Source: Oikopleura dioica (lineage: Eukaryota > Animalia > Chordata). Taken from it: a stretch of 64,000 bases of DNA. The notes under the pieces are model-generated. The model saw only the letters and a list, made by a program, of their open reading frames with translations. It was not told where the DNA came from and did not search any database. A program made the translations under genes and the position numbers. The stretch is from positions 1,798,001 to 1,862,000 of the forward strand of contig OU015566.1 in NCBI GenBank assembly GCA_907165135.1, written 5' to 3'. Of the stretch, positions 9,335-21,474 are shown one piece after another. The stretch's first letter is position 1; each line of letters opens with the position of its first letter.

Positions 9335-12300
9335 TTATACATCTTGGCTTGAATTTTCTGAAATTTTCGTGGTTCTTCTTGGTTCAGAAACTGATTTTGA
9401 CGATGCTGTGTTTCTTCGACTTTTGGATTCTTCCTCGAGTTCCTCTAGAATTTCCGGCATCATGACGAAGGATTTTCTGATCTCGCTTCCGAAGTCTGTT
9501 GGAATGCTCATCGATCTATTCTGCTGCACTCTCCTGAAATATTTTGATAAAAAAAGGAGGAGATTTGTAGTGCTTATTCTATTGTATGACTTTTGCAACT
9601 TCATTCTGAAAGCGAGCTTGCCCTTGGCGCGCGAAGAGCGCATGCGGCGCACTGTACCTGACCAATACAGTACAGCGAGACTAGCCAAGCAGCGAGCGCG
9701 CAGGTGCTGTAAAAACCAAACTCCTCCGTTTTCCGTGCTCCTCCTTGGTTTTTAATGCTCCTCCTCGGATTTCGAAGCTCCTCCACGAAATTCCGTCATT
9801 GTCCACGGATCTCTATATAAACCGTTCACTGTGCACACATAATTAATCACACTCCCAGAGATAAACTTGAGTGATCCGCTATCAAACACCCCATCAGTAG
9901 AATTAATGATTTCGATGAACTTTTCTTCTAATTTACAAACATTGATTATCTAGGGAAAATTTACAGGGTTGAAAAGTCCGGCCATGATCACAAAATGATT
10001 CATATTGAATTTATCAGAATGATAAACGCTCAGTTGGGCGAAATGCCTTTATCGGTTCACGAAAGGAAATGTGGCGCGGCGTTTCGTTTCTTGATTTTGC
10101 TTACGCGCTGATTTTCATTTCAAGAATCGGTGCGGACGAATCTTGATTCACTCATTTTGGAACCACTTTAGGTTTTTCGTTTTCAGCAGAGTTGGCAAAT
10201 TAGCACTCCATGTCTTTCGAGGAAATTCGAAATCAACTGCGTGAAATTGAAGAAAATCATGAAAAAGAGATAATGCAGCTTCAAATGGAAAAAGACGATT
10301 TTGCCCGAGAAACTCTTCGCCGCTCAGTCAGCCTTAGCAACCTTGAGGTAAATATTTATGATTGTATCAAGTAAAATAGTGAATATACGAAAATTTCTTT
10401 TCGTTTATACGAAAAATAAAAGTATTCTTTAGGGTGCTTACAAAAACGCGCTCAAGCTGCAAGAAAATTTAGAAAAAGAAAATTCGGAGTTGCAGATTGA
10501 AAGGACCGAGCAGCAAAAAGCAATGACGAAGTTGAAGAAAGAAAATGCCAATCAGCAAAAAACAATTACGAAGTTGGAGGAAGAAAAGGCCGTGCTGCAG
10601 CAAAAACTGTAAGAATTCCATTTAAAAAATACTAATTATTCTTAAGAGCTGCGTATGCTTCCTTCGATGCCTTTATGAAGATGCAACAAGAAAATGCTGT
10701 GAATAATGCTGTGGCAGAAGCCGTAAGTTTGATATAAATCTAAGGCTAGGAATTTAATTACTTGCTTCAGTTGATGAAACAACGAGCTGCTACGGAGCGA
10801 GAAAAGGAGGTCGCGAGAGAAGCAGGAAGAGATGAAGCGGTTAGTCTCTTAGAATTTTGTTTGATCTGTATGATTTCTTCAGTTTCGAGGCATGGCGAAT
10901 GCCTGCATGGAAGAAGGCCCCGAACAAAAATCGCGACGAAAGAAAGCTCGACGAGGCACTGAGCGACGCTAAGCGGCGGTATTCAGTTACTCCTAAAATT
11001 TAGATTGTTTGAAAATAAAAAAAAAATATTTCTGTCAAAACTTTCTCGTTCTTAATTTCAGATAAGAATAGATAAAGAATACTCAGCAGGGCATTCTGTT
11101 ATCTGAGCTGGTGGTCCAAATGCAAAAGCCGCAGTTTGCATTGTTTGATTTCCAACTTGAGCAGATCCACGTTTTAAAAATCAGGGTTTTCAATTTCGGA
11201 TATCCGTCGATCCGCTCGTCAAGTACAGCTAAAATACAGTCATTCTGCTTGTAAGAGTGAAATAAATGTAGATCTGCGTTTAGCATCTCCGACTTGTTTT
11301 AAGAACAGAACGGTCGAGTTCATTTTCGATACAAAAATTTTTCGGAGCATTATTCATGTTTGTTTGGAAACAGGGATATTACCAAGGAGGAGTCTGTAAT
11401 TTCGTTAGCTTGAATAGTGTTTACGAAATTTCAACTCAGTAAACACGGCTGGCCCGCTAATTCAGTTCCCCTTTTTTCGTGAACTTGGAAAATCGCTTTG
11501 ATTCGGGCTATCTACTCTTTAGACAAGAGAGGGAATTAATCCTATGGCTTAATATTTCTTATTATCCTCTCACGGCCGCCGTCTGATAATGTCCAACGTG
11601 AGCCAGTTAACCTAAGCTGCAACAATCGCATGATTCTCGGGCTCTGATCCGCTGCGGGAAATCCGAATTCGGGCGATCTTTTCTTTCTTTTTCACACCAG
11701 GTTCGTTTTTTTCGTAAGAAAAGGGATGATTTCGCAAGATCAGATGCACTAGTTTTGTATTTAGAGAAATAAACTGTGCTGTGCACTTGTTCTTGCGTAT
11801 TCAGAAAGCGAAAATATTATGGGCGCGGTTTGTCATGGAACGGATCACTGTCAGATTATCCAACAGTATACCAATGATGGTGGCAGTTACTAGTAAATTC
11901 TGCCGCGTTCGGCCTCCTTTAGACGGCTTGTTTGCGCCTTAGAAGCTATTTCTCTCTTTCTGTCTATTTCCTTCAAACTGCAGTTTTTCGAATTCGTCCT
12001 TTTTGCGCGATTTAGAATCGAGACCGCTTCCCGAGATTTCACACTATCGCCTTGCTGCTCACCTGCGCAAGATTGAGGTGAATCTCAATCTTGCATCGGG
12101 TCTAACCCTAAGCTGCAGAAAAGAAAAAAGAGAATCTTCTGCGGTTTGTTTATCATTTTTTTTGAAAAAATATCAGCAAGCTTGAATTGCAAATTTTCTG
12201 AGAAGCAGTTTGAACTTCGAAGACGGCAACCTTTCAACACGTAGCTGCATTGCAACAAAATTCTGGGCATTTAATCAACACAACAACTTCAACTTGCTCC

Positions 12301-15300
12301 CTTAGGTACTTATTTTCTTCAAACGACGATCACGAAGCTTCCAAGATGTCTACAAGAGTGATCTTACCGTAAGTATTGGAATTATACAATTTGTACCCTT
12401 TTCTTTGTCACTTGCAAAATAGAAGCAAGCAGTACAAAATTTGGTGACTGAAAAAAACGGCGAGAATTTACGACTGTAAATCACGATTCCCCGAACACGA
12501 TCGAAGAGAGCTGCTGTCACGATCGAAAAGAGCTGCTGATTCGATAGAAGAGAGCTGCTGATACGATCGAAAAGAGCTGCTGTAAACGATTTTTCCTGAC
12601 TCTCCTAAGGACAGCTATAAGGTCCTTTATAAACTATATCCAGGGTGAACCTAAGCAAGCGGAGTTTAACCATAAGTTGAACCACCGACAGATGAACCTT
12701 TAGGATCGATTTTCGCAAATATAATCGGACCTTCTGAGCGCTTCAACAATGAGTGACACGTATTTCAAACTTGTTATCGATCTGAGCAGAACGGAGCTCG
12801 TGAAAATTTACGATTCACTGGATGGGCGAGTCTTTCCAACGCCAATTCCAATAAGTGATAAAGCTTCCGTTGCCGCGAATATCCTTCACGTGGATGAGTC
12901 AGTCCTCTCTCGCGGAAAGAAATACTTTTTCAAGAAAGAAGCCGAAGGCTCTGTTAAATATCTACCCAATTTTGCCGCGGATCACCCAAATGTAGCAGAT
13001 TCGGTTGAACAAAAATACGCGAAAAGACACCACCGATTGGATCTCGATCGAATTCAAACGTCGAAAAACGCGAAAGATGTTGATTCATTGATTGCAAATC
13101 TACCCGTCACTGATAGCGATATCGAAGACGAAGTCGATCTGTACGACGATGAATCTGTAAACGAGGCGGACGAAACTGTAATTCCAAATACAGGGAACTC
13201 TGAAAAACGTGAGAATATCAAGAAAGAAAATACTGAGCCAAAGCCGCGTGTGCAAAAACCAAAGTCAACAGCGAAATCAACTCCACCAATGTCGACGTCA
13301 GTGCAAACATCGTCAACATTAAAAGTTAAACCACCGAAATACGATGGAACAATACCTATCGCTTCCTGGCTCAAAAAAATCTCGATATTTACGCCCACTG
13401 TTCCAGGTTGAAAGACAATGAGGTAATCACAGTGGCACTAACGACACTTCTGAACGAGTCAGAAGGCAGTCATATCATCGAGAGCCTTGAAGAAGAAGAC
13501 CTCAACGATTGGAGAAAATTCAAACAGCGTCTAACAGCGATGCTTGGTAAAACCGCTGACTACTACAAAAATGAATTCAAAACCTACAATCGCGGATCCG
13601 ACAGCTTCGGAATGTGTCTAAGCAAACTGATCAGTCTTTACAAACAGGGATTCGGCCTGAAAAATCTAACACAAAACGACAAACTTCTAATCATAGAGCG
13701 ATTTGCTGAAGCTCAGGATCAGAAAATCCGCGAACTGCTTATGCGAGAAAAATCAGCGTTAACGATCGAGAATATTGCTACAAGAGCAAATGAAATCGAA
13801 AATGCTATCCCGAAACGCGACATTAACTTCAGTATCAAAACTGAAGAAAGAAACGAGATGTTCCGAGAGTTTGTGAACCAAATTAAAGAAATGATTCGTG
13901 CAAATCGAAGTGATGAGAGAAGAATCACTGAAAAAATCAACCCGGAAAAACTGGAAGGATACTGCATCAACTTCATTAACAATCGCAATTGCAGATTTAA
14001 AGATGAGTGCAAATATCTTCATTCCGAAAATGCGCCGAGAAGAGTTATTGACTATGTTTCTCAACTGAAGAAGACACAGTTCTCGACCTATTCTGCGATT
14101 GTACAAATCAATCGCAGGCAAAACACAATAAAAACGAGAAAAATATAATCCAAAAAATGAGAAGAGAGGAGAAGAGATGAATACATTTAAGAGCAATCCC
14201 AATGAGAGGGATGATCAAATTTTTCGAATTATTATTCTGCAGCCATCTCAAAAGCTGTAAGAAAATGATATCGAAATCATCGCGAGAGTTCAAAATCAAT
14301 ACGATAACTAAGAGGGAGAAGTTTTTCCGCCGAGAAATTATACGAAAATATAAGGAATGTAAAACGAGACCTTCTTGAGTCCTTACAGCTTAAAAATAGC
14401 TGACTGTATGCTGGAAGACCATCAACAAACAGAGAATGAGAAGGAGCGAGAACCGTGCCATGGACCTCGTATAATCCATGTTATCAAATGGCTAGTTAGC
14501 TTCAACGCAGAGGAAACCTGCTCTATCAAACCCAGCCTTGGCCCGCACAGCTACCCTGATGGCTACTGGACTTGTGGACCTCTATTTTTATGTGATATTT
14601 GTGCCCACCGCGCGCACCCGGGCCCAAATCTCTCCATATGATATGTTTCATGATGAAAGTAGAAGCAAAAATCGCCTGCTTCGCGTACAGCTTAGTTTAT
14701 CGAAGAAAAGAAAAAAAAATTATACAGAGATCGACGAACAACACCGATTGATCACGATTAACAATCAACTGATGAGTGAGCAACACTTTATTCCTGAAAT
14801 ATGTGCAAAAGTCATAAATTAAGAAAGGAAGGATTTGTAGTGCTTATTCTATTGTATGACTTTTGCAACTTCATTCTGAAAGCGAGCTTGCCCTTGGCGC
14901 GCGAAGAGCGCATGCGGCGCACTGTACCTGACCAATACAGTACAGCGAGACTAGCCAAGCAGCGAGCGCGCAGGTGCTGTAAAAACCAAACTCCTCCGTT
15001 TTCCGTGCTCCTCCTTGGTTTTTAATGCTCCTCCTCGGATTTCGAAGCTCCTCCACGAAATTCCGTCATTGTCCACGGATCTCTATATAAACCGTTCACT
15101 GTGCACACATAATTAATCACACTCCCAGAGATAAACTTGAGTGTCAATAAACTACGAGATAAAAACTTTTGTACCCTTTTTCTTTGTCACTTGCAAAATA
15201 GAAGCAAGCAGTACAGATTTTTGACCTTACCTTGGTTCCATTTGATAGGCCATTCCCGGCGCTCCATTTTTCTGCCCTTTCATCAAATGCCTCATATACG

Positions 15301-16255
15301 GGCTGTTTCTCACTTGCTGTCTTCCTTCATGAGTATCGACGGAGAAAACACTTGGACTTCGCCCCTGTTTGATCATGAACTCGCTGCTCTGAAGGTCATC
15401 TTGTTTTTCGCTCGTTTCTATCGACGGAATCGGCGCAGCTTGGGTCTGTTTTGACAAGGAAGAAATCGTGAGAAATCCAAGAAAATGTAGGATGATGATT
15501 GTGATGATTTTTAAAACGAGGGTGACGGAAATGTAGATGACTCCTCGACTCCACTGAAATAGAAAATGAAAATAAGCTAGAATTAATTGACCAATTATAT
15601 TATATTAAATTTAACCTTATATTGAAGCTCATCATAATCTAAGTAATCGTATCTCAAACTTCCATAAGAACTGACATAAACCAGCAGGCAAGAAAACAGC
15701 AACAACAAACTGATTCCAAAACCAATCAGAGCACCACTCAGCCAAATAATAGCAGGAAGAATTTCTTTGGACTTTTTGCTTTCTTCGCATTTTTGAGAGT
15801 ATTTGTTGCCCATGTAGGCGGCGAGAATGGAAAAGATGGAGATGATGAAGGAAAGAATGCTGGTCGTTTTGAGGATGAGAAGGGTTTCCGAGCTCATTTC
15901 GACGGAATGATAAATCATTGACCCAAGACGGCTGTTTCTGTTGTGAGACAAGGAATTGAAATCTGCGCAGTAGACATTTCCCTGAAGATGAAGACAAATA
16001 TGAGCTTATTGCAAAAAGATGAATTACTTTTGAAACATCTGTTCGGCAATAACCCCATATTCCTGCCTCCAGATAAAAGTCTTCTGAGTCTTCTGTTAGA
16101 TCAACTACAACCGGTTATTCAATGAATAAAAAACAAAAATTTTGATGAGAAAACCGATTTCCTGAAACCCAGGATCCAGACAAAATCGCAGCACCATGCA
16201 GCGCAAAGCCCAAAAGCTCAGATCCGGAAGCAATGCAGAGCGCGTAAAAGCGCAT
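9335..16255 (-). CDS. Claudin/PMP22-family tetraspan protein; last intron contains an LTR element
   Basis: TM1 MRFYALCIASGSELLGFALHGAAILSGSW, then the signature GIWGYC and a second Cys (GNVYC), then three more TM segments. Exon ending EPR at 15231 splices in frame to RVQQNRSMS at 9533. Confidence 0.75.
9566..9873 (+). repeat. 5' LTR, first 308 bp
   Basis: Matches 14836-15143 with no mismatch seen by eye. TATATAAA at 9814-9821. Confidence 0.9.
10210..10972 (+). CDS. Intact 5-exon 182-aa coiled-coil protein inside the 5' LTR insert
   Basis: Exons 10210-10347, 10433-10608, 10647-10722, 10771-10839 and 10883-10972. All introns are GT-AG and the spliced length is 549 nt with no internal stop. 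Heptad-rich MSFEEIRNQLREIEENHEKE...; basic tail SRRKKARR. Confidence 0.8.
11990..12372 (+). pseudogene. Possible truncated second gene fragment at the end of the insert
   Basis: CTGCAG acceptor, exon-like FFEFVLLRDLESRPLPEISHYRLAAHLRKIE, and a final GTAAG donor at about 12369 that is cut off by the resumed LTR. Confidence 0.3.
12390..12436 (+). repeat. 5' LTR, last 47 bp
   Basis: Identical to 15168-15215 and ends in CA. Confidence 0.9.
12749..14148 (+). CDS. Gag-like protein with a CCCH zinc finger, split by a 1-nt frameshift at A7 13373-13379
   Basis: KPPKYDGTIPIASWLKK is a retrotransposon-gag-like motif. The -1 frame continues NLDIYAHCSRLKDNEVITVAL. C-x8-C-x5-C-x3-H at 13963-14022. Confidence 0.7.
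14836..15215 (+). repeat. 3' LTR (380 bp, complete)
   Basis: TG...CA ends, TATA box, and AATAAA at 15146-15151. Confidence 0.9.
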
Positions 16256-16418
16256 ATTCAAGTTTTCTCTGCGGGTTAGTAAATGTCGCTCTTCAGAGTA
16301 AGCGTTGCGTTCTGCGTGATGTGTGCAGATCGTTAAACACGATGACTTCTGCTATTTGGAAACCATGCTCTATCATAACGTTCCGCTTCGAACGAAGCGC
16401 TGGGCAGTCATAGCCGAA

Positions 16419-17407
16419 GGGCCGTCTCAGCCCCATTCCTTGATTTTTAAATTTAGGCTTGAATACCCTTCGGGCCGTCTCAGCCCCGTTCCTTGATTTT
16501 TAAATTTAGGGGCTTGACGCCCTTCGGGCCGTCTCAGCCCCGTTCCTTGATTTTTAAATTTATGGGGCTTGACACCCTTCGGGCCGTCTCAGCCCCGTTC
16601 CTTGATTTTTAATTTAGGCTTGATTGGCCCTTCGGGCCGTCTCAGCCCCGTTCCTTGATTTTTAAATTTAAGGGCTTGACATCCCTTCGGGCCGTCTCAG
16701 CCCTGTTCCTTGATTTTTAATTTATGGGTTTAGCCCTTCGGGCCCTTCGGGCCGTCTCAGCCCCGTTCCTTGATTTTTAAATTTAGGCTTGATTGCCCTT
16801 CGGGCCGTCTCAGCCCCGTTCCTTGATTTTTAAATTTGACGGCCCTTAAGGGGCGTCTCAGCCCCTTCGGGCCGTCTCAGCCCCGTTCCTTGATTTTTAA
16901 ATTTAGGGGCTTGACATGCCCTTCGGGCCGTCTCAGCCCCGTTCCTTGATTTTTAAATTTAAGGGTTTGACGGCCCTTCGGGCCGTCTCAGCCCCGTTCC
17001 TTGATTTTTAATTTAAGGGCTTGACGGCCCTTCGGGCCGTCTCAGCCCCGTTCCTTGATTTTTAATTTAGGCTTGACAGCCCTTCGGGCCGTCTCAGCCC
17101 CGTTCCTTGATTTTTAAATTTAGGGGCTTGACGGCCCTTCGGGCCGTCTCAGCCCCGTTCCTTGATTTTTAAATTTATGGCTTGACGGCCCTTCGGGCCG
17201 TCTCAGCCCCGTTCCTTGATTTTTAAATTTAGGCTTGATTTGCCCTTCGGGCCGTCTCAGCCCCGTTCCTTGATTTTTAAATTTAAGGGGCTTGACGGCC
17301 CTTCGGGCCGTCTCAGCCCCGTTCCTTGATTTTTAAATTTAAGGGGCTTGACGGCCCTTCGGGCCGTCTCAGCCCTGTTCCTTGATTTTTAAATTTAAGG
17401 GGCTTGA
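16419..17407. repeat. Tandem minisatellite, about 18 copies of about 55 bp, each containing a GC hairpin
   Basis: Unit GGGGCTTGACGGCCCTTCGGGCCGTCTCAGCCCCGTTCCTTGATTTTTAAATTTA. Confidence 0.95.
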
Positions 17408-19619: not shown

Positions 19620-21474
19620 ATGAAGCTTTTTACGATTTTTGCAATTATCGGTTTTTCTGAAGGATACAAGAGAAAATCGGCGAACGTTTGTCATAATTAC
19701 CACGAAAAAGTTTTTGGAGAAGAAAATGGGGAAATCGGGATGAGTGATTTGACAAAGAGAGAATATTCGATCTTTCCGAGCTTTTTCAGATGCAATTGGA
19801 CCATTCAAGCGCCAAAGGATAAAAGTAAGAATATTTTTGAATCGATTTCAAAAAACCATAATATTTTCGTTGTTTCGATAATTCAGGATTTTTGGTAAAA
19901 AATCGTGATCAGTACTTATTTAAAAGCAATATTGTTGTCAAAGAGAAACTGACGTACTTTCATGTCAACTTAAAATAGGGGACTGCCTTAATCGTCGTTA
20001 AAACGTTGCATCGAACTGTTTTAGTCGTCGTTAAAACGTTGCATTGGGCTGCCTTAGTCGTCGTCTTGGGAGAATCTGGAAAGTCTTCGGAGAATCTGGA
20101 AAGTCCAGAAACACTCTGAAAGCGCTGGTTGGCGCGCGCCTACCTATCTTGAAATTGAAAAAGGCAAGATGACTCAGACGACGACTAAGGCAGCCCAATG
20201 CAACGTTTTAAGGACGACTAGAGCAGTCCGATGCAACTTTTTAACGATGATTAAGGCAGCCGATGCAACGTTTTAACGACGATTAAGGCAGTCCCCTATT
20301 TTATTATAGTTAACTTTAAGATTTCTTATCGTTGAATCATTATTTTTTTCTAGAAAGCAAGTAGACGAGAACTATATTTATGCTTTAAAAATGCTGAAAT
20401 TCAATTTTCGAAAAACAGGGTGTTTGTTAAAAACCCTTAATAATCACTTTAGTCGAACCATTAACAATTATCAATTAATTATTTTCTTTATAATTATATT
20501 CAAGAGCTTTTGGTAAAAGTCAGTCGATCTTCAAACGCGGCCTACCCGCGTCACAAGCCGCAAAAAATGCCTGGAACGTGCGACGATAAGCTCGCCATCG
20601 CGACCGAAACCGATAGCTACAATATCTGCGGCTTTTATAGCACCTTCCCGCCCGCTTTTCTTCTTTCAGAAGGTGAAGAATTGAACTTTTTCTTTTCGAC
20701 GATGACTGGTGGACAGATGACTTGGGATTTTGACGTCAGCTGGGAGGAATTGTGGGATGAGCAGGAAGGTGTGGAGAGGATTCAAGAATTGATGAGTCAT
20801 TTCAAGAAGGTGTTGAAGATGGTTAATAAGAAACATTATTCGATTAAGGTATTCTTGACAAAAATTTTTTGCTTATTATTATATATACCATATTATATAT
20901 ACAACTTTACTGTAAAAGAAATACAGTAAAACCACTGAATACGTCATGGCGATGTGTCAGGAACCGAAAAAACTCGACAAATTTTTCGTTGAAATTTTCA
21001 ACCAATCAAAAGCCTTGATTCGGTCTACCGGCCAATCAGCGGCCGACTACCCGCCAACGCAAAATTTGTCGAATTTTTATCGTTTCTTGATGCAGCCCCT
21101 AAGTAAAACTGTATAACTAATAAATTCAAATCAAAAATTTATTTTTTTAGTACAAAATGAATCAGCTGAGCCCAATGTTTTCTTCGACAAATCTCATCTG
21201 CAACTCACCACTCAACCCGTCAAAATACGGCGCTGCCACCTTCCGAAATTGGACAAATACGGTCGAAAAAAGCTCCAATCCTTGCAAACTCGCAACCTCC
21301 ATCAAAACCGGCCTCGAGTTTTTCCTCGACAATCATGTCTGCCTCGACGGCGTTTTCAAATCAAAAGCGGATAAATGGAAGTCTTTGGTGGAAAATTTCA
21401 ATGGTGATTTTTGCGAAATGAAACACGAAGAAAAACGCTTCGCGAAAATAATGAGAATGGTCAATCGAGGGTGA
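19620..21474 (+). CDS. Secreted CUB-domain protein, paralogue B
   Basis: Signal peptide MKLFTIFAIIGFSEG. CUB motifs CHNY..EENGEI, CNWTIQAP, CDDKLAI..ICG. KVLKM followed by a GT donor. SNPCKLATS..VCLDG module. Confidence 0.75.
19978..20296. mobile_element. Intronic MITE with about 115-bp TIRs, TA-flanked (Tc1/mariner-like)
   Basis: GGGGACTGCCTTAATCGTCGTTAAAACGTTGCATC and its reverse complement. About 30-bp subrepeats. TA on both sides. Confidence 0.75.
20960..21086. mobile_element. Copy of the paired-CCAAT MITE family (intronic)
   Basis: Reverse-orientation relative of 117-241. CCAAT at 21002 and 21032. Confidence 0.6.

Follow-up and report, generated by a model that had tools for sequence, protein, structure and literature searches.

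The Oikopleura dioica LTR retrotransposon at 9566–15215 carries a complete intron-containing gene in its 5' LTR, and the locus looks like a one-off break-repair scar that duplicates an existing gene, not like a new gene or a cargo system. We put at roughly 60% the probability that the 5' LTR was broken after integration and mended, by microhomology-using repair, with 2.5 kb from a genomic locus resembling one on C2 of the assembly. The genome is O. dioica OKI2018_I69 and the locus is on chr1; all coordinates are those of the window, that is, the whole stretch of 64,000 nucleotides that was analysed.

The element lies antisense within an intron of a minus-strand host gene, in agreement with the sequence-only reading, which had placed it in an intron of a third gene. 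The host exon upstream of this intron (15231–15457, minus strand) ends at the donor AAG/GTAAGG, the intron starting at 15230. The downstream exon (9335–9533, minus strand) follows the acceptor TTTCAG/G, the intron ending at 9534, and the frame runs on from the upstream exon. Without the element, the intron would be about 42 nt long. The LTRs are a direct pair of 380 nt, TGTAG..GTACA, flanked by GATT. The two copies of GATT (9562–9565 and 15216–15219) pair as a target-site duplication and obey the 4-bp rule of the relatives, ATCT for a solo LTR on C3 and CGTA for a full-length relative on C1. The TG..CA ends of the LTRs and the GATT duplication together indicate a single integration event.

The 3' LTR is intact and occupies 14836–15215 (plus strand), hence the length of 380 nt given by the sequence-only reading stands, and its position was one base off. 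The left arm of the 5' LTR (9566–9873, plus strand), comprising U3, the TATA box TATATAAA at 9814–9821 and the start of the predicted R, is identical over 308 nt to 14836–15143. The right arm (12390–12436, plus strand), that is, the end of U5, ...GCAGTACA, matches 15168–15215 over 47 nt with one difference in the length of a T-run, so that the arms have 0 substitutions in 355 nt. Between them, the 24 nt found at 15144–15167 of the 3' LTR, TCAATAAACTACGAGATAAAAACT, with AATAAA at 15146, are swapped for a 2516-bp insert at 9874–12389 (plus strand), exactly the asymmetry that had been claimed. The TATA box is invariant across the family alignment, and so are the 24 nt with AATAAA in the LTR alignment covering the C3 solo LTR and both C1 LTRs. 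Since other LTRs of the family keep these 24 nt, the change in the 5' LTR is derived and post-dates the family, which upholds the earlier view that it is very recent.

The internal region (12437–14835, plus strand) contains gag split into two ORFs, 12749–13411 and 13408–14148, the second with a CCCH finger; of pol, neither protease, RT, RNase H nor integrase was found in the element. Three leader repeats, 22 nt each, are situated at 12498–12582. A conserved TGGTGACTGA located 5 nt past the 5' LTR is a candidate primer-binding site, and AAGAAAGGAAGGA precedes the 3' LTR by 2 nt, with the polypurine tract at 14821–14833; both features are common to the C1 relative. We also considered a tandem element and rejected it, as the string ...GGA(G)GATT preceding both LTRs is due to a target site that looks like the polypurine tract. 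Scanning the window with Rfam and for tRNAs yielded nothing. In the C1 relative, whose LTRs are about 80% identical, the domains RVP, RVT_1, RT_RNaseH and rve occur in that order; it has gag, protease and RT-RNase H-integrase (the gypsy order) plus one further ORF. Related gag-only copies are present on C3 and C4. Given the full pol of the C1 relative and the gag-only content of the window copy, the latter is a non-autonomous derivative. Judged by its sequence, the element is a very young, defective, gag-only LTR retrotransposon of the Ty3/gypsy type.

The genome contains the insert only once, and none of about 20 other LTR matches carries it. Searched in the assembly separately from the LTR, it has matches elsewhere only on C2. 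The upstream flank of the gene (9898–10158, plus strand) is 94–98% identical to the minus strand of G000:C2 at 2433134–2433028 and 2432019–2431864. The downstream flank (11064–12389, plus strand), where no convincing ORF was found, is 91–96% identical to the minus strand of C2 at 2430994–2430669 and 2409429–2408477, two stretches that are 21 kb apart on C2 and contiguous in the insert. Relative to C2, the window carries 65 extra nt at 11282–11346, and the C2 copy has an extra TIR transposon of about 1 kb at the position that corresponds to 10004. We considered whether the gaps against C2 at 10004 and 11457 might be spliced introns, implying a retrocopy, and rejected this: the first is this TIR transposon, inserted in C2, and the second is the 21-kb stretch, which has no terminal repeats and has one end duplicated elsewhere on C2.

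At the left border of the insert, positions 9875–9897 (plus strand) are the last 23 nt of a TIR MITE of about 289 bp, its terminus ...CACCCCATCAG abutting TAG; for base 9874 (A), the choice is between an untemplated addition and a MITE variant. The MITE has at least 28 matches in the genome, in inverted pairs about 265 bp apart flanked by CTA/TAG. C2 has no MITE, and where the insert has the MITE terminus, C2 has an empty CTAG site. The four introns of the gene, the non-coding sequence around it (336 nt upstream and 1.4 kb downstream) and the 23-nt MITE end identify the insert as genomic DNA, not cDNA.

At the right junction, TTTGTA, a microhomology of 6 nt, is common to the C2-type sequence and the start of the right LTR arm. 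The left junction shares 0–1 nt, that is, no clear microhomology, with a possible extra A. The insert ends show no terminal repeats and no target duplication, and 24 nt of the target are lost, which supports break repair. Continuity across the borders was checked on contigs: an Illumina-derived contig of run X1, an independent short-read set, crosses the left junction (9811–10121) with 0 differences, and no contig crosses the right one among the matches listed.

The gene itself (10210–10972, plus strand) encodes a coiled-coil protein of 182 aa in frame in five exons, 10210–10347, 10433–10608, 10647–10722, 10771–10839 and 10883–10972, with GT..AG in all four introns, as had been predicted. It is already annotated as Oidioi.mRNA.OKI2018_I69.chr1.g404.t1 (chr1.g404, CAG5102654.1) with the same four junctions; the annotated product, P0001, has 161 aa and starts at M22 of the 182-aa model. 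An acceptor-like TTTTCAG is seen at 10180–10186, 23 nt before the ATG, and AATAAA at 11014, past the stop codon. The C2 paralog is intact, 195 aa long, with the same five exons and phases. The two proteins share about 32% of residues and the motifs GAYK, AGRDE, MAN and a basic tail; their introns cannot be aligned. The suggestion of a gene birth is contradicted by this paralog and by the nature of the insert, which was copied as DNA from a C2-like locus and includes the non-coding flanks and the MITE stub.

The joined 182-aa and C2 models served to establish the frame and the exon-by-exon identity; databases were queried with single exons or P0001. Pfam searches per exon gave only sub-threshold coiled-coil noise. 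Among 1.84 billion representatives, exon 2 matched the annotated product of this same gene, a giant coiled-coil protein and nothing else; searching by words of P0001 retrieved only P0001, and an Atlas search only generic long-helix look-alikes. Exact look-ups of P0001 and two junction-crossing ORFs found nothing on record, and metagenome scans with the MITE/flank junction and an exon 2 word were empty. No third family member was found in the same genome with the exons of both paralogs as queries. As no relatives were found outside the O. dioica genome, these appear to form a two-member orphan gene family. The flanks are 91–98% identical and the exons and introns unalignable, which suggests old, recombining gene lineages. 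C2, which has the other version of this hyper-divergent gene, is probably the X-specific region.

No exact donor turned up in the assembly. Since C2 has no MITE and its gene body has diverged, the true donor should be a third copy or an allele missing from the assembly, and the X5 contig hints at a copy adjoining a complete MITE. With 0 substitutions in the 355 nt of the LTR arms against a 2–9% difference between the insert flanks and C2, the event can be dated as recent, and C2 drops out as the direct donor. Because the assembly contains no exact donor, which way the copying ran and when it took place are deduced.

The following course of events would account for these data. A gag-only Ty3/gypsy-type element would have integrated into a tiny chr1 intron, and its 5' LTR would later have been broken some 25–30 nt downstream of the predicted transcription start. 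Microhomology-using repair, in which a free DNA fragment was end-joined or a template was copied by replication with switches, would have deleted 24 nt, the poly(A) signal among them, and added 2.5 kb from a genomic locus. The donor may have been a relative or allele of the C2 locus with a MITE at its left border; the putative donor junction would join the complete MITE to TAGAATTAATG, with the "A-type" of a small, fast-diverging coiled-coil gene coming next. An intron-containing gene that already existed would thereby have been duplicated from one chromosome to another at the DNA level, and the sense orientation of the duplicate just downstream of the LTR promoter would be an accident. With poly(A) signals now standing between R and gag, the element has probably been killed by the insert. 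O. dioica lacks canonical NHEJ, and induced breaks are repaired by MMEJ, according to Deng et al. 2018 as cited in PMC11067885; in the literature searched, we found no documented case of kilobase-scale capture at a break in this species. As a separate observation, the break inside R together with the sense orientation of the gene is a possible hint of a reverse-transcription error.

Such an error could have produced the asymmetry directly. The sequence-only reading took it as established that LTRs are regenerated as identical copies; this is not strict, since an error in plus-strand strong-stop DNA would end in the 5' LTR only. Within R, reverse transcriptase would have left its template for a foreign nucleic acid packaged in the same particle and then returned, copying 2.5 kb and skipping 24 nt. 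Both breakpoints indeed fall in the predicted R at a distance of 24 nt, microhomology is present at the right junction, an antisense and hence unspliced template would account for the kept introns, and template-switch chimeras internal to LTRs are known, BARE-2 being an example (PMC13317346). However, the particle would have had to contain intergenic DNA, MITE stub and gene in the form of 2.5 kb of antisense RNA or cDNA, two non-homologous switches would be needed, and nothing similar is seen in any other copy. By sequence alone a switch of this kind and DNA repair look the same; we consider the switch unlikely.

It is also conceivable that the locus is a snapshot of the DNA-level first step of a retrovirus-like transduction in a chordate, in which a Tor-type promoter would express a second, autosomal copy of the gene and read-through RNA would seed both daughter LTRs. 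If true, an intact cellular gene now occupies R of a 5' LTR, oriented in the sense direction, and the LTR has lost its poly(A) signal. We think this very unlikely, and less likely again is a functional cargo already under way, with the LTR promoter driving the gene and read-through RNA copying the insert into both daughter LTRs. The arrangement would suit it, as some 360 nt separate the invariant TATA box from the gene downstream, which is read in the sense direction, the LTR has lost its poly(A) signal, and transcription of Tor elements starts in the 5' LTR (PMC4402516). Yet the insert occurs once, its intact introns indicate no passage through RNA, four AATAAA motifs lie between the LTR and gag, and the element has a split gag and no pol; the cargo system proposed from the letters is not supported. 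Nor were RNA reads of the gene found, in counts too low to weigh on its expression: X17 has 0 reads over the whole 5.95 kb, the host exons being equally at 0, and X14 has only 2, both on the host exon at the left end; the runs presumed to be RNA (X20–X24) hold at most 1% of the sampled words.

It is highly improbable that a MITE transposase moved a MITE end with adjacent DNA into the LTR. The insert does start with MITE sequence, but the terminus points inward, toward the C2-like DNA, the LTR junction lies 23 nt inside the MITE, the window has no second terminal repeat and no TA duplication, and 24 target nt are lost, so the junction anatomy contradicts this explanation. More improbable still is a chimeric joining of chr1 LTR reads to donor-locus reads during assembly. 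In its favour, the assembly lacks the exact donor, and each junction is bordered by repeats; against this, the X1 contig passes the left junction with 0 differences, the LTR resumes in register after exactly 24 missing nt, and g404 is annotated on chr1. An insert ancestral to the LTR and deleted from the 3' copy, the alternative offered by the sequence-only reading, has nothing in its favour beyond the asymmetry itself, is contradicted by the 24 nt with AATAAA invariant in the C3 and C1 LTRs and by the non-LTR genomic homologs and MITE stub, and has a practically negligible probability.

Under break repair, the preferred explanation, the locus would be a clean, datable case of a compact genome lacking canonical NHEJ that copies an entire gene, as DNA, from one chromosome to another: 2.5 kb of ectopic sequence would have filled a break in a retroelement weeks to generations old. 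The extreme scrambling of gene order in O. dioica could be fed by events of this kind (PMC11067885). This is a single locus, it reveals no new mobile-element mechanism, and a function of the gene at its new site is hypothetical. The two-member orphan family with its conserved flanks may merit a study of its own.

In retroviral transduction, the proposed first step occurs at the DNA level and places a cellular gene behind an LTR promoter. The window resembles this step in having a cellular gene in sense orientation behind such a promoter, but it shows no read-through chimera, spliced copy or spread, and the gene is not fused to a viral one. Tor elements are Ty3/gypsy LTR retrotransposons, or endogenous retroviruses, of O. 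dioica (PMC4402516). They share with our element the host, TG..CA LTRs, a TATA box and AATAAA, and with the C1 relative the gypsy-order gag, protease and RT-RNase H-integrase plus a further ORF; unlike them, the window copy is gag-only, with a broken gag frame and a foreign 2.5 kb in one LTR. The best named protein matches are to 'gypsy retrotransposon integrase-like protein [Oikopleura dioica]', and the Tor likeness is a candidate one.

MMEJ is the prevailing end-joining route in O. dioica (Deng, Henriet & Chourrout 2018, as cited in PMC11067885). The bases lost at the break and the microhomology on one side of the insert are consistent with it, although the published cases, as that citation presents them, are small deletions at induced breaks; the ectopic insert of 2.5 kb is far larger, and it is from the junctions that we infer the pathway. 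Captures by plant LTR elements (maize, rice; the BARE-2 chimera) are explained by read-through or by RNA-stage template switching, and consist of many propagated copies, usually of fragments (PMC2774510, PMC13317346). As there, host-derived DNA resides in an LTR element, and, as in BARE-2, within the LTR itself. RNA-mediated capture is expected to yield no introns, or to affect both LTRs or several copies, whereas the window has four introns and an insert in the 5' LTR only, in a single copy: a complete intron-bearing gene in one LTR, with the anatomy of DNA repair.

A single LTR retroelement spans positions 9566-15215. Its LTRs have the ends TGTAG...GTACA, the 3' LTR being 380 nt long (14836-15215), and it is surrounded by a 4-bp target duplication, GATT; duplications of this length are also seen at a solo LTR on contig C3 of the O. 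dioica OKI2018_I69 assembly (ATCT) and at a 7.5-kb relative on contig C1 (CGTA). The interior (12437-14835) encodes gag only and lacks pol, gag being read on the plus strand as two ORFs, 12749-13411 and, in another frame, 13408-14148, which contains a CCCH finger. The C1 relative encodes a 469-aa gag, protease and RT-RNase H-integrase, in the order found in Ty3/gypsy, and the nearest matches to its Pol are gypsy-like proteins of O. dioica. The gag-only interior, taken with this full-length gypsy-type relative, marks the copy as a non-autonomous member of a putatively Tor-like Ty3/gypsy group.

Several gag-only relatives are present on C3 and C4 (C3 1283761-1286931, C3 2458182-2460157 and C4 608121-611190, LTR matches about 2.8 kb apart), C3 being a Y-specific contig of 2,916,375 bases, called YSR in protein P0036, that hosts several of them. 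The short non-autonomous derivatives in this family look recently active. The leader, between a primer-binding-site-like motif and gag, features three 22-nt tandem units (CGATCGAARAGAGCTGCTG.., 12498-12582). One contig from run X1 lacks 2 nt at 13373, near the gag frame change of the assembly; therefore family copies, or alleles, differ in the gag frame.

The element lies antisense within an intron of a minus-strand host gene, one exon of which ends at 15231 (AAG/GTAAGG) and the next starts at 9533 (TTTCAG/G). The reading frame is open across this join, and the intron without the element would be about 42 nt, a typical size in O. dioica. Just past the host-gene exons there is a tandem array of about 18 units of 54-56 nt (16410-17400), crossed by no ORF of at least 50 aa in any frame. 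A foldback-like structure occupies 19971-20303 and is probably a small foldback element or MITE (a small terminal-inverted-repeat transposon): its perfect 43-nt inverted arms are separated by 247 nt, it contains 33-nt sub-repeats, and there is an 84-nt arm pair at 93%.

The LTR asymmetry and gene-bearing insert described in the sequence-only reading are confirmed. The two LTRs show no difference in their initial 308 nt, and in the final 47/48 nt they differ solely in the length of one T-run; between these arms the 3' LTR has TCAATAAACTACGAGATAAAAACT, whereas the 5' LTR has 2516 nt (9874-12389). Alignment of the element LTR with the solo LTR on C3 and the two C1 LTRs shows no change in the TATA box (TCTATATAAAC) or in CAATAAAC; hence the insert-free LTR is ancestral, and the alternative of a deletion from a gene-bearing LTR was dropped. 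Transcription is predicted to start near 9845, given the TATA box at 9814, and cleavage, given AATAAA, near the equivalent of 15170, which would place the break point within the predicted R region.

Outside its own locus, the insert matches only contig C2 (12,959,145 bases). The matching segments are 9898-10004 (C2 2433134-2433028, 98% identity), 10003-10158 (2432019-2431864, 94%), 11064-11281 (2430994-2430775, 94%), 11347-11458 (2430780-2430669, 96%) and 11456-12392 (2409429-2408477, 91%). The interruption of about 1 kb in C2 at the point equivalent to 10004 is a terminal-inverted-repeat transposon, present in the C2 copy only and not in the chr1 copy. It occupies 6021-7028 of L027, a stretch of that assembly (G000:C2:2432020-2433027), within the upstream flank, and has terminal inverted repeats of about 35 nt (CATGGGCGACCCTTTGTTACTCGATAAAACGCTGGC). 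No terminal repeats were found on the 21-kb C2 gap, and one of its ends has a duplicate at another place on C2.

What looked like filler at the start of the insert, its first 24 nt, is a MITE end: TTCCGCTATCAAACACCCCATCAG has at least 28 occurrences genome-wide, paired in inverted orientation at a distance of about 265 bp and in every case adjoining TAG. The MITE terminus in the insert adjoins TAGAATTAATG, whereas the same place in C2 is an unbroken GCTAGAATTAATG; therefore the DNA was copied from a C2-like locus with a MITE at that CTAG, an exact donor that is absent from the assembly. The MITE family is about 289 bp long, with terminal inverted repeats CTGATGGGGTGTTGGATAGCGGAA and CTA/TAG flanks, as at 1236-1524 of stretch L040 (C1:4432273-4432561), and has at least 14 copies over C1, C3, C4, C5 and C10.

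Illumina-derived X1 contigs cover, without differences, 9811-10121, which spans the left junction, 10092-11147, which includes the entire gene, and 11493-12369, and a second one runs on into C2 sequence at 12369, as expected of a paralog. In X5, a run of another study, the right junction of element and host is present (contig starting at 15186); X5 likewise contains the insert-type (A-type) gene, its exons 2-5 being identical, with two intronic differences there (10641, 10751) and one more within 10092-10401. The sole X5 contig at the left border ends two unaligned bases past 9875, before the LTR, as expected for a copy adjoining a complete MITE, which weakly hints at the donor arrangement in the population. 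No empty-site contig (9565 joined to 15216) was seen among the X1 and X5 contigs listed. Run X17 has 0 reads on the whole 5.95 kb covered, host exons included; X14 has two reads, in the host exon only, and almost none of the sampled words are present in older runs guessed to be RNA.

The insert gene is annotated as Oidioi.mRNA.OKI2018_I69.chr1.g404.t1 (CAG5102654.1), the window being chr1:1,798,001-1,862,000. The earlier five-exon, 182-aa model has canonical splice sites and shares its four junctions with the public model, which starts at M22. Between the conserved flanks, 10159-11063 has no DNA-level alignment to C2, where the counterpart (G000:C2:2430995-2431866; L027 4995-5866, minus strand) is an intact gene of five exons and 195 aa with the same intron phases. 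Identical residues in exons 1-5 are 12/46, 24/58, 5/25, 10/23 and 7/29 (about 32% overall), and GAYK, AGRDE, MAN and the basic tail are common to both. No further relatives of either paralog were found in the O. dioica genome, nor of the chr1 gene in large protein collections; nothing beyond a long helix or coiled coil emerges from Pfam and the ESM Atlas. The diverged block extends from about 50 nt before ATG to about 90 nt past the stop, exons and introns being unalignable and flanks 91-98% identical. This mosaic suggests that the two are old alleles or paralogs whose flanks recombined or were converted. The insert gene is a copy of a lineage-restricted gene that already existed and was not born in the LTR.

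The insert has neither terminal repeats nor a target duplication, and 24 nt of the target were lost. The LTR and the C2-type sequence share TTTGTA at the right junction; the overlap at the left is at most 1 nt, possibly with one additional A. A DNA template is favoured by the introns, intergenic DNA and MITE stub that the insert has kept. The LTR arms have 0 substitutions in 355 nt, whereas the insert flanks differ from C2 by 2-9%; thus the event is very recent, in support of the proposed recent post-integration capture, and C2 was not the template. O. dioica lacks canonical NHEJ and uses MMEJ according to Deng et al. 2018, as cited in PMC11067885, and microhomology-mediated break repair fits such a species. 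We favour, with a probability of about 0.6, a break that struck the 5' LTR after integration and into which ectopic DNA would then have been joined or copied via microhomology. The asymmetry could instead have arisen at reverse transcription, as errors made in plus-strand strong-stop synthesis would, on the established model of how retroviruses replicate, reach the 5' LTR only; but this origin calls for an antisense template of 2.5 kb and for two illegitimate switches, and we consider it unlikely. The MITE stub is oriented in a way that contradicts capture by a transposase, which is highly improbable.

Transcription of the insert gene could come from either of two sources: the LTR, whose TATA box is about 360 nt upstream and to which the gene is in sense, or the gene's native upstream DNA, of which 336 nt with an acceptor-like TTTTCAG are retained. 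Full-length genomic RNA of the element is unlikely, because most of R has been displaced and four AATAAA motifs now stand between it and gag. These features, added to the lack of pol and the division of gag, make it most likely that the copy is dead. Gene birth is not supported, in view of the intact five-exon paralog on C2, nor is a cargo system, as the insert is single-copy with introns kept and the element lacks pol and has a split gag. The locus rather adds a new case to two familiar processes, the capture of ectopic DNA at a break and the duplication of a gene at the DNA level, its location in an LTR being incidental.
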